Shown piece after piece: positions 575 to 34,369 of a stretch of 64,000 nucleotides of DNA. Positions within the stretch are counted from its first letter, which is position 1; every line of letters begins with the position of its first letter. Origin of the DNA: Macrostomum lignano (taxonomy: Eukaryota). The notes under the pieces are model-generated. The model searched no databases and had not been told where the DNA came from. It saw nothing but the letters and a program-made list of their open reading frames with translations. The position numbers and the translations under genes are program-made. Location of the stretch: assembly GCA_002269645.1 (NCBI GenBank), contig NIVC01001341.1, positions 1 to 64,000 on the forward strand, written 5' to 3'.

Positions 575-3067
575 ATTCGTGAGCAGCCTCGACTCCAATC
601 TGCAATCCCAAGTGGCCGACTCTTGCTCCAAATGGCGCCAGCATCTCTCAGATGAATTGGCCCTGTCTGAATCTGTCAAAATCGATCAGTACGTTCGCAA
701 AGGTGACTGGAGTTCAGTCAGGCCGCCTGAACGGCGATTAACAGTTTGGGATACCGGATTCGACACTGACAAATTGAAACGCATAGCAACCGCTTCTGTA
801 GCAACTAAAGATTCAACATTTCAATTGCATCCTACGTTAGTTAAAGGGCACGTTGCTAAGCGGTTAGAGCGCCTAGCAACGGGTATGGATTGGGCCACGG
901 CCGAGTGTCTGGCCATCGGCTCGCTGATGCTGCAGGGTCGGCATTGTAGAATCAGCGGCCAAGATGTTGGCAGGGGTACATTCAGTCAGCGGCATGCTAT
1001 GCTAGTTGATCAGGCTGGCGGCGCTATCGATGTACCGTTGAATAGGCTGGCCGATGCCTCCGGTAGGCTGGAGATCGCCAACAGCATTTTATCCGAAGAG
1101 GCTGTGCTAGGATTCGAATTCGGCATGGCCATGGATCAGCCCGATCGGCTGTGCATCTGGGAAGCTCAGTTCGGTGACTTCTTCAACGGTGCTCAAATTA
1201 TTATTGACACTTATATTGGCTCGGCTGAGGCTAAGTGGGGCCATCAGAATGGCCTGGTGCTGTTGCTGCCTCACGGTTACGATGGAGCTGGGCCGGAGCA
1301 CTCCAGCTGCCGGATCGAACGTTGGCTTCAGCTGACTGATTCTAGCGAGGTTGAATCCGACACCGATATGGTTAATATGCAGGTAGATTAGCTGCACCTA
1401 TTCACGCTGTTGTCTGTGTTGAGTTCTTTTTAAATTTGACAAATATTTTTGTCAATATTCGACGGCGGGATTAGTTTGATTAATTAAGCTCAAAAAGCTC
1501 GAAACTTCACAAACTCGAATCTTCACAAACTCTATTCTTCCCAAACTTGATTCTTCCCAAACTCGATTCTTCCCAAACCCGATTCTTCCCAAACTCGATT
1601 CTTCCCAAACCGATTCTTTCCAAACTCGATTCTTCCCAAACCCGATTCTTTCCAAACTCGATTCTTCCCAAACTCGAATATTCACAAACTCGAATCTTCT
1701 CAAACTCGATTCTTTCCAAACTCGATTCTTTCCAAACTCGATTCTTCCCAAACTCGATTCTTCCCTAACTCGATTCTTCCCTAACTCGATTCTTCCCAAA
1801 CTCGATTCTTCCCAAACTCGATTCTTCCCAAACTCTAATATTCACAAACTCGAATCTTCTCAAACTCGAATCTTCACAAGCCCGTAGCTTCACAGACTCT
1901 AAATTTCAGCCAGCTCGAAAAAAGACTAATTAGCAAGATTTTTTCTACTTTAATTTTTTTGCTTTTAGCTTTAGAAAACGACATCGATAGTAATTCGCTG
2001 GAAACTATGATTTAGTATCTAACGGAGACTTTAAATTAATTACCTTTCTACCAAGGTTGTCAACCCGACCACGCCTGCTCAGTACTTTCACCTGCTTCGT
2101 CGCCAACTAATTGGTAGGAAATTTCGTAAGCCTCTAATTGTTGTCAGCCCGAAGACTTTGCTAAGACACCCGGCTGCAGTGTCCAGTTTGGAAGAGCTCG
2201 CACCTGGTAGACACTTTCAGCATGTTCTGCCCGACCCTTCTGTGAGATTTGATCTTCACTTCTTTGTGTCCATGTTCTTGAATGTACCCTGCCCCAAAAA
2301 GAAAGTACTTTGAGCTCTTCCCCTCTGCCCCAGAATACATGTACATAGCCCTTCCCCCTGCCTCCAGAATGACTGTACACTGAGCCCTTCTCTCTGCCCC
2401 AGAATGAATGTACACTGAGCGGTTCCCCCTGCCCCAGAATGTACACTGAGCCGTTTACCTCTGCCCCAGAATGTACACTGATCCGTTCCCCTCCGCCCCA
2501 GAATGTACACTGAGCCGTTTACCTCTGCCCCAGAGTGTACATTGAGCCGTTTACCTCTGCCCCAGAGTGTACATTGAGCCGTTCCCCTCTACCCCAGAAT
2601 GTACATTGAGCCGTTCCCCTCTACCCCAGGGGATGTACATTGAGACGTTCCCTCTGCCCAGAATGTACATTAGAAAACGAATCAACCATCTGCAGGCGCC
2701 ACAAAGCCCTAAGCGGATAATCATGTGCACAGGCAAGCACTATTACGCGTTGGACGAATATCGCAGAGCCAAGTCGATAAAAGACGCCGCTATAATTCGC
2801 GTGGAACAGCTGACCCCGTTCCCGCTGCACGATGTGCACGCTCAACTAGCCAAATATCCCAACGCTAGGGAACTGGTCTGGAGCCAAGAGGAGCCTCGCA
2901 ATATGGGCGCGTGGTCCTTTGTTGAAGCCAGATTGAGGAATCTTCTGGGCCTGACTGGTGTGCGCTATGCTGGCAGAAAGGAGCTGGCAACACCGGCTGT
3001 TGGTATCGGTTCGCTGCATCGAAGTGAAGCTGACCAACTGATGACTGACGCTTTCTTTTATAATTAG
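575..3067 (+). CDS. DHTKD1: 2-oxoadipate dehydrogenase E1 (DHTKD1), 3' part; exons 575-1382, 2056-2241, 2696-3067; 5' exons lie upstream of the window
   Basis: Motifs [45 protein letters not shown] and [20 protein letters not shown] (the GAG..SSCR form is DHTKD1-type rather than OGDH-type), then [17 protein letters not shown] and [15 protein letters not shown]. Canonical AG/GT boundaries; the two internal junctions are phase 0. Confidence 0.93.
1500..1900. repeat. 16-bp minisatellite, DHTKD1 intron
   Basis: Unit AAACTCGATTCTTCCC; a related array lies at 9050-9230. Confidence 0.9.
2310..2675. repeat. ~32-bp minisatellite, DHTKD1 last intron
   Basis: Unit GAATGTACACTGAGCCGTTCCCCTCTGCCCCA. Confidence 0.9.
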
Positions 3068-4619: not shown

Positions 4620-5400
4620 GAATCTATAGACTTCTATCCCAAATCTATAGACTTCTATCCCAATCTGTAGACTTCTATCCTTCTATCCCAATCTGTAGAC
4701 TTCTATCCCAAATCTATAGACTTCTATCCCCAATCTGTAGACTTCTATCCCCAATCTATAGACTTCTATCCCTAATCTGTAGACCTCTATTCCCAATTTA
4801 TAGACTTCTATCCCCAGTTTATAGAATTCTATCCCCAATCTATAGACTTCTATCCCCAATCTATAGACTTCTATCCCAAATCTATAGACTTCTATCCCCA
4901 ATCTGTAGACTTCTATCCCCAATCTATAGACTTCTATCCCCAGTTTATAGAATTCTATCCCCAATCTATAGACTTCTATCCCCAATCTATAGACTTCTAT
5001 CCCAAATCTATAGACTTCTATCCCCAATCTGTAGACTTCTATCCCCAATCTATAGACTTCTATCCCTAATCTGTAGACCTCTATCCCCAATTTATAGACT
5101 TCTATCCCCAGTTTATAGAATTCTATCCCCAATCTATAGACTTCTATCCCAAATCTATAGACTTCTATCCCAAATCTATAGACTTCTATCCCAAATCTAT
5201 AGACTTCTATCCCAAATCTATAGACTTCTATCCCAAATCTATAGACTTCTATCCCCAATCTGTAGACTTCTATCCCCAATCTATAGACTTCTATCCCAAA
5301 TCTATAGACTTCTTTCCACAATCTATATACTTCTATTCACAATCTATAGACTTCTATCCCAAATCTATCAACTTTTATCTCCAATCTGTAGAGCTAGTTC
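4620..5400. repeat. 21-bp minisatellite
   Basis: Unit TCTATAGACTTCTATCCCCAA. Confidence 0.95.
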
Positions 5401-5779: not shown

Positions 5780-7135
5780 ATGGATGGATCAACTGCTGAT
5801 CACGAAGTGCCAATAATCAGTCCGTCTACTTCTAGTAGCAACAGGCAGCAATTATTCGCCGTTGGTAAATTGTTAGCTGAAAAATTCGAAAATGGCGTCG
5901 CGCATTTCAAAGTTCGCTGGAAGAATTATTCGTCAGCTCACGATACCTGGGAACCGGAGAGCAACCTGAGCTCCGTAGCCGAGCTGGTGCAACAATTTCG
6001 ACAGAAAGGTGCCGTCGCTTCCGGCAGTGGCGTCGGTAGCTCTGCTCACACTACTGCCAGTAGTAGTTCTAGAAAACGTAATGCCAATCGAAAATGGGAC
6101 GTCGTGCCCGCTAGTCAGTTAGTCGCGTCGAAAACGAAATTTTTCGACGATTTAGAAGCGGGTAAAATCGATATTATGTAAGTGAACTTTGTGGTTTGGA
6201 TTGAGACTTGTAGCTAACGTAATTTGAATTCTCCTGGGCAGGTGTGCCAATTAGAGGCAGAGGGCTGTGTGCACCCTGGCGCACTTCAAGCGACATTGTC
6301 ACACAACCGGCGAGAGGCACTGCTGCCCATTCCACTGACTCCCCTGAGCAGGCACACAAGCGCGCGGATACGTACGCAGACACACACTCACACAGGAGTG
6401 TACAGCGGCCCTAACTTTATTTATCGTTAGGCATGTACACTTCACTGTGCCTTGGGGGTTGGGCCTCAAGGCCGTTAATTGCACGAGCAGAGCCAAGCCA
6501 AGACTCCAATTTAGCCCCAAATTAATGTGACTGCACTTGGAATCGAGCCTGGGCCGCTGGTCTACGGCGCTCTTGGCTACCCATACAGTCATTGTCAATC
6601 AATTATCTTTGAAGTCTTTGTTCAGATTGACAATATCCTCATTGAGTCTTTGTTCAGCTCGCTAATATCGATACCCCATTTAAAATGAGCCGTTGGCCAT
6701 TCGAACTTTTCCTTGGTCTCTGTTCATCATCAAGCGCCTCATCAACTTCTCTCCTCCCCCTTCCTCAGATCTAACGATCTCTACAGTCGTGTGAAATGCC
6801 GACGTCGAATCAACGGCGACAGCGAGAGCGCCGCTTCGGACCTGGACGATGACGAAATCGACGTCCCAGTTCGAGCCGTCTCATCCGAGCCTCCAGTCCA
6901 GTCCCGATTCGAAGAGTCCGAAAAAATCAATGACGATTTGAATAATGAAAGTCGCACAGCTGATGCCGGTGAGGCTGATTATGAAGACGATGATGATGAT
7001 GATGTGGATGCGAATTCGAACCACTCGGATACTGGCAGCTGCTTTGCGGCCAACTCTGTTGGCTCGTCTAGCACCGTTGAGATGGACGAAAGCCGGCCAG
7101 CTGTTCAGGTAGCTGGGCGCGTTTTTTATGACAGG

Positions 7136-7168
<33 letters not shown>

Positions 7169-7194
7169 GGACACTAAGACAGACATACAGACAT

Positions 7195-7261
<67 letters not shown>

Positions 7262-7287
7262 ACTGAACTGACAGACACACACACAGG

Positions 7288-7325
<38 letters not shown>

Positions 7326-7388
7326 ACTGAACTGACAGACACACACACAGGCAGACAGACAGACAGACAGACACATAGACAGGAAGGC

Positions 7389-7436
<48 letters not shown>

Positions 7437-7480
7437 GGACACTAAGACAGGCAGACAGACAGACAGACAGACAGACACTA

Positions 7481-7525
<45 letters not shown>

Positions 7526-7616
7526 ACTGAACTGACAGACAGACAAACAGACAACTGAACTGACAGACACACACACAGGCAGACAGACAGACAGACAGAC
7601 ACATAGACAGGAAGGC

Positions 7617-7664
<48 letters not shown>

Positions 7665-7708
7665 GGACACTAAGACAGGCAGACAGACAGACAGACAGAC
7701 AGACACTA

Positions 7709-7753
<45 letters not shown>

Positions 7754-7896
7754 ACTGAACTGACAGACAGACAAACAGACAACTGAACTGACAGACACAC
7801 ACACAGGCAGACAGACAGACAGACAGACACATAGACAGGCAGACAGGAAGGCAGACAGACAGACAGACAGACAGACAGACACTAAGACAGACACTA

Positions 7897-7965
<69 letters not shown>

Positions 7966-10900
7966 CTAAGACACACAGACAACTGACAGACAGACAACTG
8001 ACAGACAGACAAACAGACTGACGAAAACAGACAGGCAGACACTTCAAGACAGGCAGACACTTCAAGACAAGCAGACACTACAAGGATAGACAGAATCTAC
8101 AAGCCAGACAGACACTACAAAACAAAGACACTTAAAACACTCGTATAAACACAGTCAGATACTACGACAGATAGCTGAACTGATATGTATATAAATAATA
8201 ATAAAATAGCAGTATAACTAGGTATAGTCAAGACATAAAGCCTATTAGTCTCACACATTTATTTTCAACCTCATTGCATCCAGGGCCTGACAACTTCCAC
8301 TGTGGCCGCTTTAAGCGTTGTTGCCAAGGATGTCATCGCTAATAACTCGGCGTCCAGTTGCGACTCTGGCTGCCCAGTCACTCCGCCTAAACAGCAGCAA
8401 CAACAGCAGAAGCAGCAGCAGCAGCAATCTTTGCTTAACAACTTGCTTTTATCCGCTAAAAAGCCTAGAATTCATACGCAAAAGCGAAAGCAGATCAAGC
8501 AGCAACAAAAGCAACAACAACACGAGGATGAAGGCGTTGTTGAAAATGATGAACAAATCGATGATGAAATCGACGAATTTGACGATTTAACTGGCGTAGA
8601 TTTGCCAACGCCTTCCTATAGTCAAGTTGAACTGTTTAGAGCTCACCTGAGACCGAGCGTTTCGGGCGATGTTGGTCGGATTGATGGCGGCGACGTCTTG
8701 ACTTTGTCAGCTAAGCAACAATTTCGCCGCAGGCGTCGTTCCGCTCCGTTGTCGTTTGCGGCGCTGTGCCAGGCGGTTGAACGTGGCGACTGGCTTGCCG
8801 TCCAGCGGACTCTGATGCTTCGCGGATCATTTAGTAGGGCCAGCTTAGCGATGGCTTCCATGCCGTCAGTTGCTGTCTCGTCTGAGGAGCGATTAACGCT
8901 AGACTGTTTTCGCCGGCTGCTTTGCTTGGCGGCTAGCCGTGGTCACGCTTGCCTGGTGGACCTGTTGCTGGCTAAAGCGCCGGAGTTCTGTGATGGACAG
9001 GTTAGAAATCCAATTGGATAGATGTTTTCTTGTAGCCTTAGGGTGACGTAGTTTTCACAACTCGAATCTTCACCGGCTCGAATCTTCAGAAGCTCGAAGC
9101 TTCAGAAGCTCGAATCTTCACAAACTTGAATCTTCACCAGCTCCAATCTTCACAAGCTCCAATCTTCATAAGCTTGAATCTTCACAAACTTGAATCTTTA
9201 CAAGCTCGAATCTTAACAAACTCGAAAGTTCATGAGCCTTCTCACTTTTCTTGTACATGCATGTATGTTCTGTTTGCATTAATTATCTCTATCCTAAGGG
9301 AGAAACTATCAACTTGAAATCCTTCAACAATGCCTGCAGAATCTAGACGTGAATTTCCAATCGCCGGACCCCTGCTTCGGCCCGGCTTCGCCTCTAATGC
9401 TGGCGGTTGAACAGGACTCGCTGCCTACTGTGCATCGCCTGCTGATTGCCGGTGCCGATCCCGACCACTGTTGCTTCGACGACAGCGGCGTCGGCGGCTG
9501 CAGAAGCTCCGCACTCTACAGAGCCATCCGTAATCGCCGGCCTCATCTAGTGGAAGCTCTCTGCTCTGAAGGTGGCGTAGATTTTGCCGCTATTGTCGAC
9601 TCGCGCGATAATTTAACAGCGTTGCGCTATGCTAAGCAAACTTGTCAGCGCAGCGCGTTGGTATTGCAACGCTACGCTCGGCAGGTGTGCAAATCGATGC
9701 ACGATCTTTTGATTGATCGGCTGGGTAGATTTGGATTCGAACCGGCTGTGCTGCTGTTCGCTCCGCATTATGTTCGGCCTGGGAGTGCTGCGGCTGCAGT
9801 CGACTCGGATAGCTGTGAGCTTTCTTTGGTTTTCCAGGGCTATGCGGTTTCTAGGCTGTTGCTATGCGGTTTCTAGGCTGTTGCTATGCGGTTTCTAGGC
9901 TGTTGCTATGCGGTTTCTAGGCTGTTGCAATGCGGTTTCTAGGCTGTTGCTATGCGGTTTCTAGGCTGTTGCTATGCGGTTTCTAGGCTGTTGCAATGCG
10001 GTTTCTAGGCTGTTGCAATGCGGTTTCTAGGCTGTTTCTATGCGGTTTGTAGGCTGTTGCTATGCGGTTTCTAGGCTGTTGCAATGCGGTTTCTAGGCTG
10101 TTGCTATGCGGTTTCTAGGCTGTTGCAATGCGGTTTCTAGGCTGTTGCTATGCGGTTTCTAGGCTGTTGCAATGCGGTTTCTAGGCTGTTGCAATGCGGT
10201 TTCTAGGCTGTTGCTATGCGGTTTCTAGGCTGTTGCAATGCGGTTTCTAGGCTGTTGCAATGCGGTTTCTAGGCTGTTGCTATGCGGTTTCTAGGCTGTT
10301 GCAATGCGGTTTCTAGGCTGTTGCAATGCGGTTTCTAGGCTGTTGCTATGCGGTTTCTAGGCTGTTGCAATGCGGTTTCTAGGCTGTTGCTATGCCGTTT
10401 CTAGTCTGTTGCTATGCGGTTTCTAGGCTGTTGCAATGCGGTTTCTAGGCTGTTGCTATGCGGTTTCTAGGCTGTTGCTATGCGGTTTCTAGGCTGTTGC
10501 AATGCGGTTTCTAGGCTGTTGCAATGCGGTTTCTAGGCTGTTGCAATGCGGTTTCTAGGCTGTTGCTATGCGGTTTCTAGGCTGTTGCTATGCGGTTTCT
10601 AGGCTGTTGCAATGCGGTTTCTAGGCTGTTGCTATGCGGTTTCTAGGCTGTTGCTATGCGGTTTCTAGGCTGTTGCTATGCGGTTTCTAGGCTGTTGCAA
10701 TGCGGTTTCTAGGCTGTTGCAATGCGGTTTCTAGGCTGTTGCAATGCGGTTTCTAGGCTGTTGCAATGCGGTTTCTAGGCTGTTGCAATGCGGTTTCTAG
10801 GCTGTTGCTATGCGGTTTCTAGGCTGTTGCTATGCGGTTTCTAGGCTGTTGCAATGCGGTTTCTAGGCTGTTGCAATGCGGTTTCTAGGCTGTTGCAATG

Positions 10901-11124
10901 CGGTTTCTAGGCTGTTGCAATGCGGTTTCTAGGCTGTTGCAATGCGGTTTCTAGGCTGTTGCAATGCGGTTTCTAGGCTGTTGCAATGCGGTTTCTAGGC
11001 TGTTGCTATGCGGTTTCTAGGCTGTTGCTATGCGGTTTCTAGGCTGTTGCTGGGTGTTTTAGGCTGCTGCTATGCGGTTTCTATGCTGTTGCTATGCGGT
11101 TTCTGTGAAATTTCTTTACGCATG

Positions 11125-11162
<38 letters not shown>

Positions 11163-11745
11163 GCTGTTGCTATGTGGTTTCTAGGCTGTTGCTATGCGGT
11201 TTTTAATCGGCTGCTATGTGGCTTCTAATCGGTTGCTATAGTATGTGGTTTCTAAGCTGTTAGTTACTCCACGAGTATTGTCATCTCACAATCTGTAAAG
11301 CTACTCAAACCCATCCGACTTGTTTTGTCCAGCGAACAACAATCGGAACTGGTCGACAAATTTTCACCTACCCGCTGATGAAGCCGCTCGGCGCGGTCAC
11401 GTTCTGGCTCTGATCCACTGCCACCAGCAGCCCAGATCGCTGCTGCTAGCGCCAGCCAGTGGCGGTGCCGAAGAGCCACCGCTCAACCTGCACTGTTGGC
11501 TATCCGATGGTCCGTGTCACGTGACCAGCGTGTTATTAAACGATCATCGACAATTGCCATTGTTAGTTAGCGGCGATCGATTTCTAGTCGGTTTGAGTAA
11601 CTGCTTGCCGGGCGAGAATCGATTAAGATTAACCTTTTCTCGCTGTCAGCAGCAGCAGGAACGGCTCAGATGCCTTCGTATTGGAGTCTTCGCCTTTCGT
11701 CTTGTAGAGCGAACCGGCAGTGAGGCGGCAACAGCTGATTCTTAA
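5780..11745 (+). CDS. MPHOSPH8: MPP8-like chromodomain-ankyrin-PINIT protein (~780 aa); exons 5780-6177, 6769-7108, 8284-9000, 9340-9814, 11333-11745
   Basis: N-terminal chromodomain LFAVGKLL...[18 protein letters not shown] with aromatic cage F/W/Y; acidic linker; ankyrin repeats ([42 protein letters not shown]); C-terminal [17 protein letters not shown]...PGENRLRL resembles the MPP8 C-terminal domain. Splice phases 2,0,0,1 join into one 2343-nt ORF. Confidence 0.8.
6290..6592 (-). mobile_element. Second putative tRNA-derived SINE family
   Basis: B-box-like GGCTCGATTCC near 6538-6548. Body (GGCATGTACAC..CTTGGGGGTTG) is shared with 43960-44090 and, inverted, with 44200-44285. Confidence 0.55.
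7130..8100. repeat. (GACA)n microsatellite with higher-order duplicated blocks, MPP8-like intron 2
   Basis: GACA runs interrupted by recurring ACAACTGAACTG / GGACACTAA blocks. Confidence 0.95.
9840..11260. repeat. 22-bp minisatellite plus a short (GATA)n, MPP8-like intron 4
   Basis: Unit GGCTGTTGCTATGCGGTTTCTA. Confidence 0.95.
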
Positions 11746-11959
11746 TAACTTTGCTACAGTTTTCATAAGAACGTCTACTCTTTTTTCAGTAGTTTGTCTG
11801 CGTAGTGTCACTCAAATTTAATTGGACAAGCTAAAATTTTCATTCATTCCTCGGGGTTGGCAGCGCCTCATGAACATATTGGGTTGAGAATGAACAGCAA
11901 GCATTTAATTCGATGTACAGAAGTGAACGCCGAGAGAGACGTAATTCAACTTGTCAGCA

Positions 11960-12260
11960 GGCCCGATCTAGCTCAACCAATCAGAGAGCAGTAAAGAGAG
12001 AGGGCAAAGTCAGACGGACGAAACTCAGCCTAGGGGCAGGCCAAATTTAGCTCAGCCAATGAGAGAGCAGGAAGGAGAGAGGTCAAAGTTAGACGGACGA
12101 AACTCCAGCCTAGTGGGGACAGTCCCAATCTGGCTCAGCCAATGAGAGAGCAGTAAGGAGAGAGGTCAAATTCAGACGGACGAAACTCCAGCCTAGGGGG
12201 GACAGTCCCAATCTGGCTCAGCCAATGAGAGAGCAGTAAGGAGAGAGGGCAAAGTTAGGT
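11960..12260. repeat. ~60-70 bp tandem repeat x4 containing CCAAT
   Basis: CTCAGCCAATGAGAGAGCAG..GACGGACGAAACTC repeated. Confidence 0.8.
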
Positions 12261-15192: not shown

Positions 15193-18100
15193 ATGCCAAG
15201 CGAAAAAGTGGCCAGATGGGAGGTGCCCCTCAGCGACGGAGTCTACATTGTAGAGTTTGAGCACGGCACTACTACTGGTGGGCGGGCAGTCTTTATTAAT
15301 GGACGAGTAAGTAGCAATATATGTATATTCGATACACATTTGGTAGTTTTTGTGACAAAAAAAAATTTTTAGAGTTTTACGTCTAGCGATTCTATGTTGA
15401 AATTTGGGTGATTCTCGGGTGAGATTTAGGGCGAATAGGCGATTCTCGGGTGAGATTTAAGGCGAAAAGGCGATTCTCGGGTGAGATTTAGGGCGATTCT
15501 CGGGTGAGATTTAAGGCGATTCTCCGGTGAGATTTGGGGCGATTCTCAGGTGAGATTTAAGGCGATTCTCCGGTGAGATTTATAGGGGATTCTTTGGTAA
15601 GATTTATTGACTATTCTCAGGTGAGATTTGGGGTGATTCTCTGGTGAGATTGATAGGCGATTTCCGAGTGAGATTTAAGGTGATTCTCTGGTGAGATTGA
15701 TAGGCGATTTCCGAGTGATATTTAAGGTGATTCTCTGGTGAGATTTGGGGTGTTTCTCAGGTGAGATTTGGGGCGATTCTCCGGCGAGATTTATAGGTGA
15801 TTCTCGAGTGAGATTTTGGGTGCTTCTCAGGTGAGATTTGGAGTGATTCTCAGGTGAGATTTGGAATGATTCTCAGGTGAGATTTGGGGCGATTCTTCGG
15901 TGAGTAGGGCGATTCTCAGGTGATATTTATGGCGATTCGCGGATGAGATTTGCGAGCGATATCACTAGAACTTAATTGAAAAAAATTCGTCGCCCTATGT
16001 GAATCGCAATCCAGTGCATTCGCCGCGAGGAGTTCATGTTTAAACTGGTTGGCTCAGAGGAGTTCAAAATCAAAGATACTCGTTGCGTCATTCGAATTGA
16101 CGCTGTCAGCGGTTTTGCTTACGAATACTGCTTGTACGTCAATGGTAAACCGTTGGAAAAGTTCACGGAGAACCAGTCCAAGGTGCTCAAGTGTTGGCTG
16201 TGTCCAGTGGATGGCAAGATGACCAGAGTTGTGCTGGAGAAGGACACCTTGGATGTCTATGTTAATAGCAAGCGGGTGGAGACTGCCGTGAGTTGCTGAG
16301 GGTCTGCCCCTGTGTCTCAGATCCTTCAGTGTCTGTACACCCCCTGTGTCTAAGAATCTTCAGTATATGTACACTCCCTGTGTCTCAGATCCTTCAGTGT
16401 CCTGTCCTATCCTGTCTCAGATCCTTCAGTGTCCTGTCCTATCCTGTCTCAGATCCTTCAGTGTCCTGTCCTATCCTGTCTCAGATCCTTCAGTGTCCTG
16501 TCCTATCCTGTCTCAGATCCTTCAGTGTCCTGTCCTATCCTGTCTCAGATCCTTCAGTGTCCTGTCCTATCCTGTCTCAGATCCTTCAGTGTCCTGTCCT
16601 ATCCTGTCTCAGATCCTTCAGTGTCTTGTCCTATCCTGTCTCAGATCCTTCAGTGTCCTGTCCTATCCTGTCTCAGATCCTTCAGTGTCTTGTCCTATCC
16701 TGTCTCAGATCCTTCAGTGTCTTGTCCTATTCTGTCTCAGATCCTTCAGTGTCCTGTCCTATCCTGTCTCAGATCCTTCAGTGTCCTGTCCTATCCTGTC
16801 TCAGATCCTTCAGTGTCCTGTCCTATCCTGTCTCAGATCCTTCAGTGTCTTGTCCTATCCTGTCTCAGATCCTTCAGTGTCCTGTCCTATCCTGTCTCAG
16901 ATCCTTCAGTGTCCTGTCCTATCCTGTCTCAGATCCTTCAGTGTCCTGTCCTATCCTGTCTCAGATCCTTCAGTGTCCTGTCCTATCCTGTCTCAGATCC
17001 TTCAGTGTCCTGTCCTATCCTGTCTCAGATCCTTCAGTGTCCTGTCCTATCCTGTCTCAGATCCTTCAGTGTCCTGTCCTATCCTGTCTCAGATCCTTCA
17101 GTGTCCTGTCCTATCCTGTCTCAGATCCTTCAGTGTCTTGTCCTATTCTGTCTCAGATCCTTCAGTGTCCTGTCCTATCCTGTCTCAGATCCTTCAGTGT
17201 CCTGTCCTATCCTGTCTCAGATCCTTCAGTGTCCTGTCCTATCCTGTCTCAGATCCTTCAGTGTCCTGTCCTATCCTGTCTCAGATCCTTCAGTGTCCTG
17301 TCCTATCCTGTCTCAGATCCTTCAGTGTCCTGTCCTATCCTGTCTCAGATCCTTCAGTGTCTTGTCCTATTCTGTCTCAGATCCTTCAGTGTCCTGTCCT
17401 ATCCTGTCTCAGATCCTTCAGTGTCCTGTCCTATCCTGTCTCAGATCCTTCAGTGTCCTGTCCTATCCTGTCTCAGATCCTTCAGTGTCATGTCCTATCC
17501 TGTCTCAGATCCTTCAGTGTCCTGTCCTATCCTGTCTCAGATCCTTCAGTGTCCTGTCCTATCCTGTCTCAGATCCTTCAGTGTCCTGTCCTATCCTGTC
17601 TCAGATCCTTCAGTGTCCTGTCCTATCCTGTCTCAGATCCTTCAGTGTCCTGTCCTATCCTGTCTCAGATCCTTCAGTGTCTTGTCCTATCCTGTCTCAG
17701 ATCCTTCAGTGTCCTGTCCTATCCTGTCTCAGATCCTTCAGTGTCCTGTCCTATCCTGTCTCAGATCCTTCAGTGTCTTGTCCTATTCTGTCTCAGATCC
17801 TTCAGTGTCCTGTCCTATCCTGTCTCAGATCCTTCAGTGTCCTGTCCTATCCTGTCTCAGATCCTTCAGTGTCTTGTCCTATTCTGTCTCAGATCCTTCA
17901 GTGTCCTGTCCTATCCTGTCTCAGATCCTTCAGTGTCCTGTCCTATCCTGTCTCAGATCCTTCAGTGTCCTGTCCTATCCTGTCTCAGATCCTTCAGTGT
18001 CCTGTCCTATCCTGTCTCAGATCCTATTCAGTTTTTCAATAAGCACTGTGTCATTCACTGCATGGTACTTCAATCAAATTTATATCAAGTTCATAACTGA

Positions 18101-18295
18101 AGTTTTTGAATCGTCAAAAAATGCACACACGCACAGGGTGAATTCACTGACGACGGCACAGAGACCCACTTTAACATTAGCGGCCACGCCTGCTACATCA
18201 AAGCCATCACTAGCGGGCACAAGCGTACTGGGCTGCTGCACGCTCTGATTGTTGACGGCTGCGAAATACCCGAAGCATCTGTTGATCAATGGTAA
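15193..18295 (+). CDS. FAIM: Fas apoptotic inhibitory molecule (181 aa); exons 15193-15306, 16015-16287, 18137-18295
   Basis: WEVPLSDGVYIVEFEHGTTTG / MFKLVG..IDAVSGFAYEY / VVLEKDTLDV / GEFTDDGTETHF are diagnostic FAIM segments. Phase-0 GT/AG junctions. Confidence 0.93.
15400..15960. repeat. ~22-bp degenerate minisatellite, FAIM intron 1
   Basis: Unit GGGCGATTCTCGGGTGAGATTT. Confidence 0.88.
16310..18025. repeat. 32-bp highly homogeneous minisatellite, FAIM intron 2
   Basis: Unit TGTCTCAGATCCTTCAGTGTCCTGTCCTATCC, ~53 copies. Confidence 0.97.
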
Positions 18296-21010: not shown

Positions 21011-21328
21011 ATATAGGGATCCATGTCAAAATTGAGTCTTTATTATTGCTCCTAGTGGAAAATTGAACTCAAAAAGATGTAGAGATATATTATCATGATA
21101 GCCAAGCTATGAGAGCGTGAAATTCCCTGAATTTTTGCGCGATAGCTATAACAATTCTTTTTTGCTGAAGAGGTGCTGTGTTAATAACTATATAATGGAG
21201 TCTTGTTGTTTATTATAGTTATTACGGAACTAATTATTGAATTTGTTGTTATCATTACTAAAACTGACTAGCTAATTTTGAGAAAAAAACTTTTTTATGT
21301 TATTCAAAAATATCCATCAGCTCCGATA

Positions 21329-24300
21329 ATGACAACTGTCAACGCTGCTGACGATCATGCTGATCTGTTGTCTACCGAAACAGCTACAGAAAAACAACAA
21401 TCAACGGTGTCCATTCCAAATCTTGGCCATATTAGCGACAATAACTTATTTAATAGCAGTTCAACTAGAATAAAATTAGTTTGGCAAACCGCTTGCATTG
21501 CGGCTATTAGTGCGGTTGTATTGAAATTATCGTCAGCGTGGAGTTTGGCGACATATTTAGCGGCAGTTGTTGGCCTAGTACTGCTCTATTGGAGCTATGA
21601 CCCTAAACAGGAGAAGAAGGCTGAAATCAGCCGGTCTAATCGAAGCGTTAATCGTAGAAATCAATCAACGATTAGTGATAGACGATTGCGTCCAGATAAT
21701 ACTTTGTTCTCCACTCTGGGTGTCACCTGCGATGACTTTTTACAGTTTCAAGCCATCACGGATCGGTTTAGCACCTTCCAGGAGATTGTGGAAGCTTGCA
21801 AAGCTACTCAGTTGGACTCCTTTAATATGATTGTTGCTGTGGACTTTTCGGCGTCTAACGAATGGCAGGGTAGACGGACTTTTCACGGGAAACCGTTGCA
21901 TAAGGTGAGTGTTGGAGTCTGCTGACTCGATTCTCAGTTGAGTTCAGAGGTGATGATTCTCAGCTGAGTTCTGAGGTGTCGATTCTCAGTTGAGTTCTGA
22001 GGTGTCGATTCTCAGTTGAGTTCTGAGGTGATGATTCTCAGTTGAGTTCTGAGGTGATGATTCTCAGTTGAGTTCAGAGGTGATGATTCTCAGCTGAGTT
22101 CTGAGGTGATGATTCTCAGATGAGTTCTGAGGTGTCGATTCTCAGTTGAGTTCTGAGGTGTCGATTCTCAGTTGAGTTCTGAGGTGTCGATTCTCAGTTG
22201 AGTTCTGAGGTGTCGATTCTCAGTTGAGTTCTGAGGTGATGATTCTCAGCTGAGTTCTGAGGTGATGATTCTCAGTTGAGTTCAGAGGTGATGATTCTCA
22301 GCTGAGTTCTGAGGTGTCGATTCTCAGTTGAGTTCTGAGGTGTCGATTCTCAGTTGAGTTCTGAGGTGATGATTCTCAGTTGAGTTCAGAGGTGATGATT
22401 CTCAGTTGAGTTCAGAGGTGATGATTCTCAGCTGAGTTCAGAGGTGATGATTCTCAGTTGAGTTCAGAGGTGATGATTCTCAGCTGAGTTCTGAGGTGTC
22501 GATTCTCAGTTGAGTTCTGAGGTGTCGATTCTCAGTTGAGTTCTGAGGTGTCGATTCTCAGTTGAGTTCTGAGGTGTCGATTCTCAGTTGAGTTCTGAGG
22601 TGATGATTCTCAGCTGAGTTCTGAGGTGATGATTCTCAGCTGAGTTCTGAGGTGATGATTCTCAGCTGAGTTCTGAGGTGTCGATTCTCAGTTGAGTTCT
22701 GAGGTGTCGATTCTCAGTTGAGTTCTGAGGTGTCGATTCTCAGTTGAGTTCTGAGGTGATGATTCTCAGCTGAGTTCTGAGGTGATGATTCTCAGTTGAG
22801 TTCAGAGGTGATGATTCTCAGCTGAGTTCTGAGGTGATGATTCTCAGTTGAGTTCTGAGGTGATGATTCTCAGTTGAGTTCAGAGGTGATGATTCTCAGC
22901 TGAGTTCTGAGGTGATGATTCTCAGATGAGTTCTGAGGTGATTATTTTCAGTTGATTTTATTAGAGAAAATTCACACTGTGTGGTTGGTTGCGCGAGAAA
23001 AAGTCGGTTTTTAGATAAAAAAATGAGAACTGAAACAATTGAAGAAATGGTTGAACATTTTACATCAGATTATTGCAATTGGTTCAATTTTATCGAGTTA
23101 TATTAAAAAAATATATAGTAGATAATTCAAATCGGCAAACCAAGTTTCTTAAATTTTTAAAGCTGGTGGGAACACAGTTTGGAGTTTCCGGAAACAGAAG
23201 ACAGGTCAGATCAGGACAGGACAGAAAACTAGATTGACGGATTAAAAATTCTCAAAACATTGGCGAACACGCTAGCTAAATTTTTTTTATTAGTTTATTG
23301 GCTTTATAGTCTATGGCCCAGAGCAGTACTGTGAAAGATCAATAGAGGCTGAACTTGACCCAGTCGGCACTCGTCTCGATCTCCTCCTCCACCTGAGCAT
23401 CGGTGAATAGCAGCAGGCGACAGACTTTCAGCTTGCTGTTGTACAGCACGTGTCTGCAGTTGCCAGCACGCATAGCGGCAGCGACGCAATGTACAGAGTT
23501 CTTCACCTGCTGCAGTTCGGTGTTGCAATACTTATTTTTATGATTAAAATACGTTCTTTTAAAGGCAGTTTTCCTCCAGATATTCTCAGCAATTGGTCTG
23601 CCGCTCTGTGTAGCTGGGTCCAATATTCGCAGGCGAAACCGTTCCTTGTGACGCACCATTCGGGTGCAAGCTTATTTTGATCGTTATATAGCTTTCCCAC
23701 GCAGTCCATGCCCCCAGAAACTGACCATCCATTTAACCACAGCGAATCGTCCAGTGGTAAAATTCCGTTATCGTTAACTCGCTGCCAGCCGGATCTGTTG
23801 CTAACTCTTTCGTCAGCCAGATCGGTCAGTCCCAGCCATAGATTGCAGTCGCAGCTCAGGCTTGGCATGCTGCTGATTAACTTCAACGAACTGTACGAGT
23901 TAACAAGCTCGCCGCCAATTAGTGCGCATTGTTGATTCGCCTCGCACCAGGTGTAACCATTCTCCGTGTTAGCGAAAACGCATTTAGCAGCCTCTAGTTG
24001 ATAGGGAGCCGGACAGGCAGCTCCAACTAGTAGCGTATTGTTGGTCAAGACTAAATTAACAACAGTTAGAATGCAAAAGAGTATAGGATTGGACATTGCG
24101 CACTGCTTTTTTGACGATGATAGATGGAAACTTCCAGATTTCGATAAACTGCTTCACTTTCGAATTAGCCTTTTATATACTATTTTCCAAATAATTGTTC
24201 AATAAAAAATTAATTCAATTTATTTGAAATGCTTGCCAATTTATAATCCAGGGAACGATTCAAGGTTTGTTAGCGTTAATATTTAATCAACTAAGTGCTA

Positions 24301-26890
24301 ATTAACGGCGCTTCTGTTTTGTCACTTTACCAGTACTAATTGTTTTGCCTGATTAATAGATGCTAATTTTTTTAATCCGAAAGATTAAATGGGCTAGTTT
24401 TTCAAGTCCTTAGGCGGTTAGTTTAGGTTATTTTTGTCGAAAATCAATCAGCTACTGAGGATCTGGGAGGCTGGCCCAGCTACTGAGGATCTGGGAGGCT
24501 GGCCCAGCTACTGAGGATCTGGGAGGCTGGCCCAGCTACTGAGGATCTGGGAGGCTGGCCCAGCTACTGAGGATCTGGGAGGCTGGCCCAGCTACTGAGG
24601 ATCTGGGAGGCTGGCCCAGCTACTGAGGATCTGGGAAGCTGGCCCAGCAACTGGGGATCTGAGAGGCTGGCCCAGCTACTGAGGATCTGGGAGGCTGGCC
24701 CAGCTACTGAGGATCTGGGAGGCTGGCCCAGCTACTGAGGATCCGGGAGGTTGGTCCAGCAATTGGGGATCTGGGAGGCTGGCCCAGCAACTGAGGATCC
24801 GGGAGGTTGGTCCAGCAACTCTAGAGCGATCTGGGAGGATACTCGACCATACTAACTGTTGTGTCCCGAGACGGACCAGCCAGCTACGTCTTGCGCTCTG
24901 TACGAGCAGGAAAACGCAGCCCCAGTCCTGCTGCTTGCCAACCCACTGTCGCACAAACGCGCAGGCAGTAGGCCAGCAACCAGGGTCGCAGCGAACGCAC
25001 AGGCCCCGGTGACAAAGTCCTAGAGGCACTTGACCCCGAAATAACAGGAACAGAACGATACTTACTGTGGCGCGGATACTTGGCGCGCTGGGCGTCTATG
25101 TTGAACACGATTGTTGGCACGCTTGTTTTTGGTTTATTGTCATATAGTATACTATTTGCGGCGAAGGAGTCAGAGGAGAAGCGGTCGCATGGGGGGGGAG
25201 GACAGGAGCGCACGCCAATAAATATCTGCCAGCACAACATGGGGTGGGGCAAAAGCTGCAGGGTAAGAGAAAAGGCGGGGTGGGCAGAGAGAGCGAGCGG
25301 GGATTGGCTGCAGCCACACAAAACGCGACTGGGGGTAGAAAACCAGAATTACAGAAAACAGCGACAGCCAATGAGAGAGCACGGAGGGGGAGGGATAATA
25401 ATAATCAGGGGTGAGAAAGTTGCAGACATAGGCTGGACAAATACGAGGGGTGATCAAAAAGTTCTGCAAGTGACCTCACAACTCTGTGCTGCAGCAGCCG
25501 AGGCGTCTAATCAGTGTCACATTCCCTTAAAGTACTTTCCACCACTATCTATGCACCGTCGCATCCGTGTGCACCATGTCTGAAAGCAGTCATGGTACTC
25601 CAAAGTTGGTATACCCTGTAGAGCTGAATGTACCGCTTGGGCAAGGTCTTGCATGCGTGAAAACGGCCTCCCAGAAACGACGGATTTGATCCTCGGGAAC
25701 AGCCAAAAGTCGGAAGGTGCTAGGTCTAGAGAGTAGGGTGGATGGGGCAGCAGCCGGACCCCCTGCTGCTCCAGGTACGCCATGGTTGATGCCGCTCTGT
25801 GCGGTGCCGCATTGTCATGGTGCAGCAGGAGTCGAGGTCCATGCCTGGTTCGCGCACGTTCCTGCCGCTCCTGCAGCACGCCTGGCAGAACAGTGTCTGT
25901 GTAGTACCTGGCAGTCACTGTGGCACCCGCTGGAAGGATGTTCACCGATACAACACCCTGAGAGTTGAAAAAAATGGTGAACATCCGCTTCCGACTGCGG
26001 AATCCGGTCTTCAGCACCTCAGGCCTTGGCTCATCTTCTGCCAGCCAGACCATGTTGGACTGCTTATCCCTCATGGTAAAGAAGGAGATACAACATTTGT
26101 CTCCTGTGATGACATCTGACAGTTGTCGTGGGCCGTGGGGCTCAAACATTTGCAGCCACAAGCGACAGATGCGCACCCTCTCTGCTTGCTGCTCCGGAGT
26201 GAGAAGATGGGGTACCCACCGAGCGCAGGTCTTTGTGCGGCCTAGTTGCTCATGCATGATGTTATGAGCACTTCCATAGCTGACACCAAGCTCATAGGCA
26301 ATGAATCTTAGCAAAAAGCTCCAATCCTCATGAATTATTGCATCGGCATGGGCCACGACATCTTCGGTCACGGATGTCCGGGGTCGGCCAGACCTTGGTT
26401 CATCGTTGAAGCTGTCCCAGCCTTCCAAGAAATGGCGCAGCCAGCAGGCAACTGTGTCAAATGATGGAGCAGAGTCAGCTAAAACATTCACAAAACATGG
26501 TGTGAATCTCTGTCACTTTGCAACCAAGTTGCATGCACATAAAGATATAGAAGCGAACACTGTCTTTTGATGTTTCCATCAGCTACTGAAAACACATGGA
26601 AAATATATGGCTGTGAAATTTTACTGGAGCACATTTGGAAGCCAAAAATGCATATAAATATAGCAAACAGATATAGCCGCATATGTGTAAGTTTTTGGCT
26701 TTTGCTGATTCTATAACTAAAAGCTATAACAAAAGGTTGCAGAACTTTTTGATCACCCCTCGTAAACAACTAAGAACAACTATGAAATAAACAACTACAA
26801 TAATAGTTCATCAATTGATTGGGTCTAGTGCAGTGGCACCAAAAAATAACAAGTTGCAAGCATGGAAGGGGTGGGGAGGGTTGGCAGAGG

Positions 26891-26952
<62 letters not shown>

Positions 26953-28613
26953 ACAGTAAGGGCAAATACATTGAGTTACTAATTCACAGCATAACTGTTG
27001 ACCGCCCGTTAATCTCCGCACAGATAACAACCACGGCGGTGTCTGGCATTCTGGGCTCGTCAGTGAGCAAACAATGGAATCCCTATCAGAGAGTGATCAG
27101 CGTCCTTGATCAGACTCTGTCAGCATTTGTGCCGCCCGGGGCGGGAATCTACGGTCTCGGCTTTGGTCACGACGCAACGTCGACAGACGCTCCGACTTCC
27201 TCCGTGTTCAATCTGGCTAGCGAGTGTGGTATCGCCCAGTTTGCTAATCGGTCGCAATTCCGTAATCTCCGCGAACTGCTAACCGCCTATAATAAGCTGG
27301 CCTGCAGTCTGCCATTGGGCGGGCCCACCGACTTGGCTGGCGTTATAAGGCGCAGCGTTGATCTAGTGCGTCAGTCTGGCGGTGACTATCACGTGCTGGT
27401 CATTATCACTGACGGGCAGTTGAGCGGCAACCCGCAGGTACTTCATGTTCACAGATTAGATCCCTATTTGACATAAAGTAGATCATGCTTGACCCAAAGT
27501 AGATGTCTGTGCTTGACCTGGTGTAGATTTATATGCTTGACCCAAAGGAGATCTCTGATTGACCCAAAGGAGATCTCTATGCTTGACCCAGTATAGATCC
27601 CTATGCTTGACCCAAAGGAGATCTCTATGCTTGACCCAAAAGAGATCTCTATGCTTGACCCAGTATAGATCCCTATGCTTGACCCAAAGGAGATATCTGC
27701 TTGACCCAAAGGAGATTTCTATACTTGACCCAAAGTAGATCCCTATGCTTGACCCAAAGGAGATCTCTGCTTGACCCAAAGGAGATCTCTATGCTTGACC
27801 CAGTATAGATCCCTATGCTTGACCCAAAGGAGATCTCTATGCTTGACCCAAAGGAGATCTCTATGCTTGACCCAGTATAGATCCCTATGTTTGACCCAAA
27901 GGAGATCTCTATGCTTGACCCAAAGGAGATCTCTATGCTTGACCCAGTATGGATCCCTATGTTTGACCCAGTATAGATCCGTATGCTTGACCCAAAGGAG
28001 ATCTTTATGCTTGACCCAGTATAGATCCCTATGCTTGACCCAAAGGAGATCTCTATGCTTGGTCCAGTATAGATCCCTATGCTTGACCCAGTATAGATCC
28101 CTATGCTTGACCCAAAGGAGATTTCTATACTTGACCCAAAGTAGATCTCTATACTTGACCCAAAGCAGAACCCTAAGCTTGACCTAAAGTAGATCTCTCT
28201 GCGTGACTCAAAGTAATGACCCATACTGTATTTCTATTGAAATCTAGACCCAAAGTAGATTTTACTAAACTTGACCCAAAGTAGGTCTCTGCTTGACCCA
28301 GATTTGACCAATAACGGACCCAATCCAATGGCCCCAATCGCAGGACAGTATCGACGCAATCGTGGACGCCTCGGACCACCCGCTGAGCATAGTGGTAATT
28401 GGAGTTGGCGACGGTCCGTTCCACGACATGTGCGAATTTGACGACAGTTTGATTCGTCGGAAATTTGACAACTTTCAGTTTGTGGACTATCACCGGGTGA
28501 CGGCCAAGGCTAAGAATGCCGACCAGTCGCTGGCGCTGCACTGCCTGATGGAAATACCCGACCAGTACAAATCTATTGTTCGCCAGGGCTATCTGAAACC
28601 TGCGAGCGGTTGA
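21329..28613 (+). CDS. Copine-family vWA-domain protein without C2 domains, with N-terminal hydrophobic segments (~419 aa); exons 21329-21904, 27024-27437, 28344-28613
   Basis: IVAVDFSASNEWQGRRTF..LH, NPYQRVIS, GGPTDLA, YHVLVIITDGQ and LSIVVIGVGDGPFHDMCEFDD..RKFDNFQFV are copine/RGLG-type vWA motifs. Phase-0 junctions. Confidence 0.85.
21925..22955. repeat. 26-bp minisatellite, copine intron 1
   Basis: Unit GATTCTCAGTTGAGTTCTGAGGTGTC/GAT. Confidence 0.95.
23339..24096 (-). pseudogene. Intronless secreted C-type lectin + PAN/apple-like protein nested antisense in copine intron 1, with a 1-nt frameshift at ~23622
   Basis: Signal peptide, then CTLD pattern C..C/WCEANQQC/LWLGL/DC..WC..FACEY. 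A second frame continues LDPATQ...HCVAAA..GNCRHVLYNSKLKVCRLLLFTDA. One extra T (GAA TAT TTG GAC) joins the two frames. Could be intact if this is a consensus error. Confidence 0.7.
24452..24830. repeat. 28-bp minisatellite
   Basis: Unit CTACTGAGGATCTGGGAGGCTGGCCCAG. Confidence 0.93.
25444..26762 (-). mobile_element. Full-length mariner (DD34D) DNA transposon, 1319 bp
   Basis: Perfect 26-bp TIRs CGAGGGGTGATCAAAAAGTTCTGCAA (25444-25469, 26737-26762) flanked by TA on both sides. Internal transposase. Confidence 0.96.
25517..26579 (-). pseudogene. Mariner transposase, frameshifted near 26493
   Basis: METSKDSVRFYIF..TEIHTMF then +1 shift to VNVLADSAP. Motifs RWVPHLLT, ITGD, HHDNAAPH and YSLDLAPSD, with 34 residues between the 2nd and 3rd Asp. 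Confidence 0.9.
26890..26950. repeat. (GA)n microsatellite
   Basis: Direct reading. Confidence 0.95.
27480..28310. repeat. 24-bp minisatellite, copine intron 2
   Basis: Unit GCTTGACCCAAAGGAGATCTCTAT / GCTTGACCCAGTATAGATCCCTAT. Confidence 0.93.
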
Positions 28614-28619
28614 GTTTGA

Positions 28620-29725
28620 AAATCGCCTATGAGAATCGCCCTAGATTATCGCCGAGTATGAGAATCCCCCTAGATTATCGTCTACTCTGAGAATCGCCCC
28701 AGATTATCGTCTACTCTGAGAATCGCCCCAGATTATCGTCTACTCTGGGAATCCCCTTAGATTATCGCCTCTTCTGGGAATCCCCCTAGATTATCGCCTA
28801 CTCTGAGAATCCCCCTAGATTATCGCCTACTCTGGGAATCCCCCTAGATTATCGTCTACTCTGAGAATCGCCCCAGATTATCGTCTACTCTGAGAATCGC
28901 CCTAGATTATCGTCTACTCTGAGAATCGCCCTAGATTATCGTCTACTCTGAGAATCGCCCCAGATTATCGTCTACTCTGAGAATCGCCCCAGATTATCGT
29001 CTACTCTGAGAATCGCTCTAGATTATCGTCTACTCTGAGAATCCCCCTAGATTATCGCCTACTCTGAGAATCCCCCTAGATTATCGTCTACTCTGAGAAT
29101 CGCCCTAGATTATCGTCTACTCTGAGAATCGCCCCAGATTATCGTCTACTCTGAGAATCGCCCTAGATTATCGTCTACTCTGAGAATCGCCCCAGATTAT
29201 CGTCTACTCTGAGAATCGCTCTAGATTATCGTCTACTCTGAGAATCGCTCTAGATTATCGTCTACTCTGAGAATCGCTCTAGATTATCGTCTACTCTGAG
29301 AATCGCTCTAGATTATCGTCTACTCTGAGAATCGCTCTAGATTATCGTCTACTCTGAGAATCGCTCTAGATTATCGTCTACTCTGAGAATCGCTCTAGAT
29401 TATCGTCTACTCTGAGAATCGCTCTAGATTATCGTCTACTCTGAGAATCGCTCTAGATTATCGTCTACTCTGAGAATCGCTCTAGATTATCGTCTACTCT
29501 GAGAATCGCTCTAGATTATCGTCTACTCTGAGAATCGCTCTAGATTATCGTCTACTCTGAGAATCGCTCTAGATTATCGTCTACTCTGAGAATCGCCCTA
29601 GATTATCGTCTACTCTGAGAATCGCTCTAGATTATCGTCTACTCTGAGAATCGCTCTAGATTATCGTCTACTCTGAGAATCGCTCTAGATTATCGTCTAC
29701 TCTGAGAATCGCTCTAGATTATCGC
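28620..29725. repeat. 29-bp minisatellite (copy A)
   Basis: Unit GAGAATCGCTCTAGATTATCGTCTACTCT. Confidence 0.95.
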
Positions 29726-30529
29726 CTATAAAATTGACCATAAAGGTATCTAGATTTTATAAAGATATTTTTCCTTTAATTTTTGTTTAAATTCTCAATA
29801 TCAGTAAAGTTTTTTTGCAATTGTTGATGATATTATCACAAGAATAAAATAGGATATATATTTTATGGTATACTTTTTATTGTTCCCTACATAAATAATT
29901 ACCAGCTGCGATGTTTTTGCTCCGTTACAAGCCATTTATAATTCCTTCTGTGGTATATGGTTGTGTTTTATAGCAGTTTATTTGATGTGATGCTTTAGTT
30001 CCTCATTTTAGTTCTTCATTTTAGTTCCTCATTTTAGTTCCTCTTTTTTACAATTATTTATTTTTCATTTCTATATATACATTGTGAATCCTAAATTTAT
30101 ATATTGTATTTTATGTAAAGACTGTGCAATTGTTATTTATGAAGCATTTTACTGCTATTACAAATGGAGTTGTTTACTGTTTATTGTTTAATTGTTTCAT
30201 TTTAACTCCATTAATGGATTTAATAGAGTTAAAATTAATTTTACTCCATAAATGTATAACTATAATATTCCAGTAGTGGTACTTATAGTAACTAGATGTA
30301 ATTTAATTTATTTAATAAATTAAAATAATTAAAATAATTAAAATAAAATAATAATATTTAATTTTTAAATAAATTTCTATTACAATTTCTAGGCAGATCA
30401 AATATTTTCAAAAAATATGTTAGTCTTTTATTTTTTATTTTCTAAAAGTTAAGTGTTACCTAATCATATGTGTCATTTATAAGAATCCCGTTTATAAAAC
30501 GTTCATTTTTAATAAGATTCTAATTCCTA

Positions 30530-34188: not shown

Positions 34189-34369
34189 GTGATTATTCTG
34201 CAGATAAAAATTTCCATAGCATAGCTCTTAGAGAGACTATGCCGCTTCTTTTGCTAAGCAGTAAAACGACTGAACTACTTGGTTTCATCAAGGACCACTG
34301 TAAATATAGTAGGACCTTAAACTCAAAGATCGTGTAGTTTTTTGGAGGCCAATTTCCTGGGGAAAAAAG

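Follow-up and report, generated by a model that had tools for sequence, protein, structure and literature searches.

Do animals outside the vertebrates carry the chromatin reader of the HUSH complex? In HUSH, MPP8, TASOR and periphilin work with SETDB1 and MORC2, and MPP8 is the methyl-histone reader in transposon silencing. The complex has been termed "vertebrate-specific" (PMC7532188, PMC10915761), and MPP8 is said to be without Drosophila and Caenorhabditis orthologues (PMC9635835). A gene of the flatworm Macrostomum lignano raises the question anew. It lies on the forward strand at 5780-11745 of the window analysed here, which is the first 64 kb of contig NIVC01001341.1 in the Mlig_3_7 assembly (GCA_002269645.1), and its 780-residue product carries a chromodomain, a linker, ankyrin repeats (ANK) and a post-ankyrin C-terminal domain (CTD; ANK+CTD denotes the ankyrin plus C-terminal region). 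By independent tests of sequence, profile and structure this product belongs to the MPP8 family, and we hold with high confidence that the locus is the M. lignano member. An MPP8-family gene with a HUSH-like mechanism is our best explanation overall, and one that we consider reasonably probable.

Sequence evidence for MPP8-family membership

A single-sequence search of 5.8e9 proteins returns, outside Macrostomum, a multi-chromodomain protein, then an "M-phase phosphoprotein 8-like" protein from the mite Oppia nitens, and fish MPP8. The best named matches outside the genus are the mite MPP8-like protein and fish MPP8; in this forward direction of a reciprocal-best-hit test, no other family comes out ahead among the named proteins. 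BLASTP against fish MPP8 gives two collinear blocks, one over the chromodomain (E 9e-11) and one that pairs residues 401-755 with 582-866 (E 2e-7). With a profile built from two flatworm paralogues and the mite protein, vertebrate MPP8 is retrieved at 7e-35 to 8e-29. When alignments of the flatworm lineage and of vertebrates are compared by hhalign, ANK+CTD matches with 99.4% probability (E 2.3e-21) over 272 collinear columns, and the post-ankyrin beta-sandwich domain alone with 88.9% (E 2.4e-6). Collinearity with vertebrate MPP8 extends from the segment that precedes the ankyrin repeats (pre-ANK) to the final strand.

The CTD is informative in its own right; the last ~190 residues lie outside every Pfam match. 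All named matches of a CTD profile are MPP8, although its vertebrate matches are partly circular because the profile included one fish sequence. A CTD hidden Markov model (HMM) made solely from Macrostomum sequences still picked fish MPP8 and one unnamed relative among 156 local proteins, of which 148 had been drawn from an ankyrin-dominated HMMER match list. The exhaustive HMMER search with the ANK+CTD profile has its scores dominated by multi-ankyrin proteins, and re-scoring its matches with the CTD-only HMM leaves a single true relative (P0084). Word-indexed searches reached vertebrate MPP8 and two mites and no other invertebrate phyla, and searches of this kind cannot map a wider distribution. 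Three human MPP8 segments quoted in the first-pass annotation of this DNA are real: tarsier MPP8 (P0170) contains LRDAVKNGD, ALHFAKQS and GPCSVQAVVLNDTFQLP, each aligned with a flatworm segment.

Predicted structure of the ankyrin and C-terminal region

The five ankyrin repeats occupy residues ~404-614 (8755-9726, forward strand, coded by 8755-9000 and 9340-9726) and match Pfam Ank_2, Ank and Ank_3, with the family hits at residues ~502-586. Their last helix is long (27 residues, 588-614) and resembles alpha10 of human MPP8. A PINIT-like beta-sandwich follows at residues ~618-769 (9736-11709, forward strand, coded by 9736-9814 and 11333-11709). It spans intron 4, and its first strand is adjacent to R615. 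The crystal structure of the human MPP8 C-terminal region (8QFB, 2024) has the corresponding parts, since it combines five ankyrin repeats with an extended helix alpha10 and a beta-sandwich of the PINIT-like type (PMC7618375).

AlphaFold2 (AF2) was run twice on residues 395-780, with an 11-row alignment that includes vertebrates and then with the two Macrostomum paralogues and the unnamed relative only, since the first alignment could have imposed the fold. With vertebrates, the model has a mean predicted local distance difference test score (pLDDT) of 76, a predicted template-modelling score of 0.76, five helix pairs (model residues 10-19/22-32, 58-70/74-87, 109-115/119-127, 149-155/159-169 and 185-192/194-220, the last helix being the 27-residue one) and eight strands. 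Without vertebrates, pLDDT is 70 and the secondary-structure pattern matches. Foldseek against the PDB places the 8qfb chains on top for the first model (E 2e-16, template-modelling score (TM) 0.72 on the target), with an alignment to 8qfb_A that covers the whole 298-residue target, and designed ankyrin proteins come next at ~8e-6. The non-vertebrate model again has 8qfb first (E 1e-13, TM 0.66), likewise aligned along the full target, its next matches lying at ~5e-6. Since both models match 8QFB before anything else, the last exon does form part of a PINIT-like domain arranged as in MPP8, as had been proposed from the DNA alone. The modelled architecture and fold are those of human MPP8, and the tests taken together support the order chromodomain, linker, ankyrin repeats and PINIT-like domain in this invertebrate.

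Chromodomain and linker

The chromodomain (5855-6007, forward strand, residues 26-76) is recognized by Pfam PF00385 at E 1.1e-12. In a PDB sequence search its three top matches are the MPP8 entries 9h77, 3qo2 and 3lwe (E ~1e-9), above CBX5, Clr4 and HP1; CBX5, the next best, is at 2e-8. F26, W47, Y50 and E58 fall on cage positions of human MPP8, and the three aromatic residues correspond to F59, W80 and Y83 in human numbering. The F/W/Y methyl-lysine cage reported in the first reading of the sequence is thus present, in a domain whose closest PDB relatives are MPP8 chromodomains. The fourth cage position is H54, which aligns with a histidine of CBX5.

The linker (residues 79-395) is rich in serine, aspartate and glutamine, with poly-Q and poly-D runs. 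Within it lies a motif at residues 118-146 (6131-6808, forward strand) that is coded across intron 1 by 6131-6177 and 6769-6808. Its consensus, F[FW]xDLxEG[KR]ID[VI]xxxDLYSRVKxR, is near-identical in the flatworm protein, in the MPP8-like protein of the oribatid mite (P0005, residues ~187-213, BLASTP E 7e-8) and in a transcript-like contig from the Logan assemblies (L002, at 448-957). It is degenerate in the Macrostomum paralogue. The motif may be a protostome-specific partner-binding site.

Gene model

The five joined exons, 5780-6177, 6769-7108, 8284-9000, 9340-9814 and 11333-11745, add up to 2343 nucleotides (nt), that is 780 codons and a stop. All four introns are GT..AG, their acceptors are preceded by polypyrimidine tracts, and the cumulative phases over the five exons are 2/0/0/1/0. 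The translation is identical (100% over 100% of the length) to GenBank PAA69195.1 and UniRef A0A267F5Z1 (BOX15_Mlig020555g1), whose gene range on NIVC01001341.1 is annotated as 5780-11745. The single 780-residue open reading frame (ORF) with phase-consistent exons that had been deduced from the letters is therefore exact in its coordinates, its introns and its product. The accompanying remark that the gene is easy to miss is moot, because the complete model already sits in GenBank, merely unnamed: its product is called "hypothetical protein BOX15_Mlig020555g1" or "Chromo domain-containing protein". As this annotation comes from genome-guided RNA-seq transcript assembly, it also lends indirect support to a single transcript (PMC5730564).

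All exons lie on the forward strand. Exon 1 (5780-6177; ATG at 5780, GT donor at 6178) codes for residues 1-132 plus 2 nt, with a Ser-rich N-terminus, the chromodomain, a Ser-rich spacer and the first half of the linker motif, and is identical to the start of PAA69195.1. Exon 2 (6769-7108; AG 6767-6768, GT 7109) carries residues 133-246, an acidic Ser-rich disordered linker. Exon 3 (8284-9000; AG 8282-8283, GT 9001) holds residues 247-485, from the poly-Q/acidic linker through the pre-ANK peptide to ankyrin repeats 1-2, which form helix pairs in the AF2 model. Exon 4 (9340-9814; AG 9338-9339, GT 9815) supplies residues 486-643 plus 1 nt, namely ankyrin repeats 3-5, the long helix and strand one of the beta-sandwich. 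Exon 5 (11333-11745; AG 11331-11332) completes the protein with residues 644-780 and a TAA stop at 11743-11745.

Two of the junctions are supported by the protein itself. The 29-residue linker motif spans intron 1 and is contiguous in the mite protein and in L002, which supports 6177/6769, and the beta-sandwich takes a strand from exon 4 and the remainder from exon 5, which supports 9814/11333. The same five exons with GT..AG introns recur at a near-identical second locus, further supporting the model. An older model of the gene (P0002, 670 residues) delimits exon 2 and the exon 4/5 junction differently.

The introns are rich in repeats. Intron 2 (7109-8283) consists almost entirely of a (GACA)n-type microsatellite (Tandem Repeats Finder (TRF): 7130-8041, period 4, 229 copies), and intron 4 (9815-11332) contains 57 copies of a 22-bp tandem repeat (TRF: 9842-11104, 96% matches). 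Intron 3 has an array of 16 bp x11 (9054-9237). A tRNA-derived short interspersed element was suspected in intron 1, where ARAGORN detected none.

Paralogues and relatives

M. lignano has two groups of MPP8-like paralogues, ~46% identical overall and 51% over ANK+CTD, and each occurs as two or three near-identical copies in the genome, which is consistent with the known duplicated karyotype. The second paralogue (P0003/P0240; Mlig014748g4/g1 and Mlig017043g1, outside the window) has 754 residues and a leucine at the position of F364. A near-identical second copy of the present gene lies on NIVC01000056.1 (L003). Its exons differ from those described here by 2 nt in 2343, one synonymous and one nonsynonymous, too few for the copy to be informative on constraint. 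Only the repeat-filled introns vary in length (1175 vs 911 nt for intron 2, 1518 vs 1387 nt for intron 4).

The paralogue P0003, the mite protein and contig L002 all have the same parts in the same order. In L002 (Logan DRR639838_137542, 4512 nt, GC-rich), a chromodomain ORF (60-359), the linker-motif ORF and an ORF with ankyrin repeats and an MPP8-like CTD (957-2672) follow one another on one strand. The frame changes between these ORFs point to short introns or frameshifts; judged by its sequence, the contig represents a further non-vertebrate MPP8-like gene. The Oppia nitens protein (XP_054163077.1, P0005), together with a fragment from Oppiella nova, resembles the flatworm protein as an invertebrate product made up of the same four parts. 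The two have the linker motif in common in the form FxxDLEEGKIDxxxxDLYSRVK, and the mite CTD matches fish MPP8 at ~1e-19. Unlike the flatworm protein, the mite protein is shorter (559 residues) and AT-rich/Asn-rich, its pre-ANK peptide is not recognizable, and it bears the name MPP8-like at NCBI.

Comparison with known systems

Vertebrate MPP8 (MPHOSPH8; 3LWE/9H77, 8QFB) is the closest known system. Its parts come in the same order: a chromodomain, then a disordered linker that leads to the pre-ANK peptide (with a candidate equivalent in the flatworm), five ankyrin repeats and a C-terminal PINIT-like sandwich. Both proteins have the same aromatic cage, putative equivalents of F548 and R741 are present in the flatworm, and the Foldseek TM to 8QFB is 0.66-0.72. 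The flatworm protein differs in its fourth cage residue (His, not Asp), in an arginine in place of F813, in insertions in ANK1-2 and the sandwich, and in its linker, which is poly-Q/acidic and carries the protostome motif whereas that of vertebrate MPP8 is Lys/Glu-rich. M. lignano also has two diverged paralogues.

The other comparisons concern single parts. HP1/CBX proteins have the chromodomain fold and cage in common with the flatworm protein, and CBX5 has a histidine at the H54 position, but the flatworm protein has no chromoshadow domain and its C-terminal half is ANK plus PINIT-like. Chp1 of the Schizosaccharomyces pombe RITS complex is a functional analogue, a chromodomain reader of methylated lysine 9 of histone H3 (H3K9me) in an RNA-linked heterochromatin complex, and the resemblance between HUSH and RITS was noted by Douse et al. 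(PMC7532188). In RITS it is the SPOC/PIN scaffold protein that carries the chromodomain, and an ANK-PINIT-like module is absent; Chp1 is not a family member. The PINIT beta-sandwich of Siz/PIAS proteins is reported to be similar in topology to the MPP8 CTD (PMC7618375). The flatworm CTD has no sequence similarity to Siz/PIAS, no SP-RING and no PINIT motif, and the likeness goes via the published human CTD.

Possible docking to a TASOR-like partner and alternative explanations

Does the flatworm protein also work as MPP8 does in HUSH? The DETERMINANTS of TASOR binding are described for human MPP8, in which residues 536-562 bind the SPOC domain of TASOR and the sandwich binds DomI, and the mutant F548G/R741A/F813A is non-functional (PMC7618375). 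The candidate equivalent of 536-562 is the pre-ANK peptide (8593-8655, forward strand, residues 350-370), which aligns with vertebrate GMDLNLDWMTLDDFQKHLNG; over residues 350-368 the alignment is with GMDLNLDWMTLDDFQKHL, and F364 falls on human F548. R615 conserves human R741, and human F813 corresponds to R716. The conservation of F364 and R615, without F813, suggests that docking on a TASOR-like partner is retained. No TASOR, periphilin or MORC2 gene lies within the 64-kb window, and TASOR-like DUF3715-SPOC-DomI proteins are reported in invertebrates, across Metazoa (PMC10578480).

From these parts a mechanism can be proposed. The chromodomain would read H3K9me3-type (ARKme3S/T) marks, while the pre-ANK peptide and the ANK-PINIT-like module would bind a TASOR-like scaffold at its SPOC-DomI part. 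In this way the protein would tether a HUSH-like silencing complex to heterochromatin and help to maintain H3K9me-dependent repression of repeats and retroelements. On the sequence features available, we lean somewhat towards such action through a TASOR-like partner in a HUSH-like complex.

Several observations weigh against this interpretation or limit its reach. Identity to vertebrate MPP8 over ANK+CTD is only ~25%, and the superposition on 8QFB has a high root-mean-square deviation (6.6-7.5 A). Both ANK1-2 and the sandwich carry long insertions, where pLDDT is low (model residues 35-53 and 282-300). Methyl-lysine binding by the chromodomain is predicted from residue conservation only, and the pre-ANK alignment concerns a short motif and comes without a statistic. 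The residue at the F813 position is not conserved, being isoleucine in the paralogue and valine in the mite. Finally, the linker motif is undetectable in the 15 vertebrate MPP8 sequences checked, which hints at lineage-specific partners.

One alternative is that the protein is a true MPP8 homologue outside any HUSH-like complex, for instance a stand-alone H3K9me reader. It might then recruit methyltransferases of the SETDB1/ATF7IP or G9a type, or use the linker motif to bring in lineage-specific partners. Human MPP8 directly binds methylated SETDB1, ATF7IP, G9a and GLP peptides (PMC7618375), and mouse cells have chromatin sites with MPP8 only (PMC10915761). The change at F813, a DomI-contact residue, fits such a role, as do the motif common to the mite and L002 but not to vertebrates, and the description of HUSH as vertebrate-specific. 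However, what is best conserved besides the chromodomain corresponds to the regions that serve TASOR binding in human MPP8, namely the ANK-PINIT-like module, the pre-ANK peptide (with F364) and R615, and invertebrates do have TASOR-like SPOC-DomI proteins (PMC10578480). We consider a role outside HUSH unlikely, though a serious competitor to the HUSH-like mechanism.

Family membership itself could be questioned in two ways, both of which we find highly improbable. The likeness might stem from two very common domains brought together by convergence in a protein unrelated to MPP8. Chromo and Ank are indeed promiscuous, the ANK+CTD HMMER search is dominated by unrelated ankyrin proteins, and the CTD has no Pfam model. 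Yet it is this non-ankyrin CTD that, taken alone, matches MPP8, and the named matches of its profile are all MPP8 (with the fish sequence in that profile). Together with the collinearity from the pre-ANK segment to the last strand, and with a match to 8QFB that stands seven to ten orders of magnitude above any ankyrin-only structure even when the alignment is non-vertebrate, this largely refutes convergence. Alternatively, the 780-residue product might be an artefact that fuses separate transcripts, for example from a chromodomain gene and an ankyrin gene, in a species with many polycistronic, trans-spliced transcriptional units (PMC5730564). The differing boundaries of the older 670-residue model would fit such a fusion, but a conserved motif runs across junction 1/2, the sandwich requires exons 4 and 5, the paralogue P0003, the mite protein and L002 repeat the same parts in the same order, and GT..AG introns with consistent phases occur at two loci. 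The first-pass annotation had named separate transcripts as a refuting condition, and this evidence speaks for one gene instead. The reading that we retain is that of an MPP8-family gene whose product probably acts in a HUSH-like manner.

Genomic surroundings

Tandem arrays flank the gene, 21 bp x36 upstream (4621-5392) and 83 bp x3.6 downstream (11958-12255). The upstream neighbour (579-3067, forward strand) is a 2-oxoglutarate-dehydrogenase-like gene (Transket_pyr, E1_dh, OxoGdeHyase_C). Such a gene also precedes the duplicate copy on NIVC01000056.1 (L003 1-489), so the duplication is segmental or larger.

Further downstream, long ORFs fill all three forward frames at 16293-18248 (651, 584 and 537 residues), as is typical of a low-complexity or tandem-repeat tract and not of a gene; its sole Pfam match, a ZNF451 zinc finger, looks spurious, as no stretch passes alone. 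A Copine-domain gene follows at 21326-27476 (forward strand), and a mariner/Tc1-type transposase ORF with Transposase_1 and HTH_32 matches (25517-26491, reverse strand) lies between the Copine-matching ORFs. A satellite-like array at ~28490-31400 (29-bp period, ~100 register copies, 90-97% identity) abuts a 15/30-bp array. The segments 30001-35066 and 37593-42590 represent a tandem segmental duplication (~5.07 kb, 97.8% identity). Both duplicates contain 15/30-bp repeat arrays and an ORF that resembles ribose-phosphate pyrophosphokinase, at 33344-34192 in the first and 40868-41716 in the second.

Significance for the MPP8 family and for M. lignano

Our literature search found no paper linking MPP8/MPHOSPH8 to flatworms, a query on planarians giving only an unrelated review, and the genome-paper supplements examined make no mention of MPHOSPH8, TASOR or this gene id. 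The flatworm gene is an unnamed member of a known family, which it extends to Platyhelminthes, and not a new kind of system. Its novelty is reduced by the mite protein already named MPP8-like at NCBI and by TASOR-like proteins already published from across Metazoa (PMC10578480). In practical terms less is gained, as a publicly deposited gene needs naming, not discovery.

A flatworm protein with the whole MPP8 architecture, candidate counterparts of the human TASOR-holding segments included, argues, when taken with the TASOR-like proteins of invertebrates, for a reader-scaffold core that long predates vertebrates and disappeared from the classical invertebrate models. More tentatively, the MPP8-TASOR core could be ancestral to Bilateria, with flatworms and oribatid mites keeping it while flies and nematodes lost it, and the two M. 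lignano paralogues might serve two HUSH-like complexes for transcription-coupled, H3K9me-based silencing of the very abundant long-terminal-repeat retrotransposons of this species and of transgenes. RNA interference and transgenesis exist for M. lignano. Repeats make up more than half of its genome (PMC5730564). The species could thus become a tractable non-vertebrate system in which to ask whether intron-sensitive, sequence-independent silencing is an ancient principle of genome defence.

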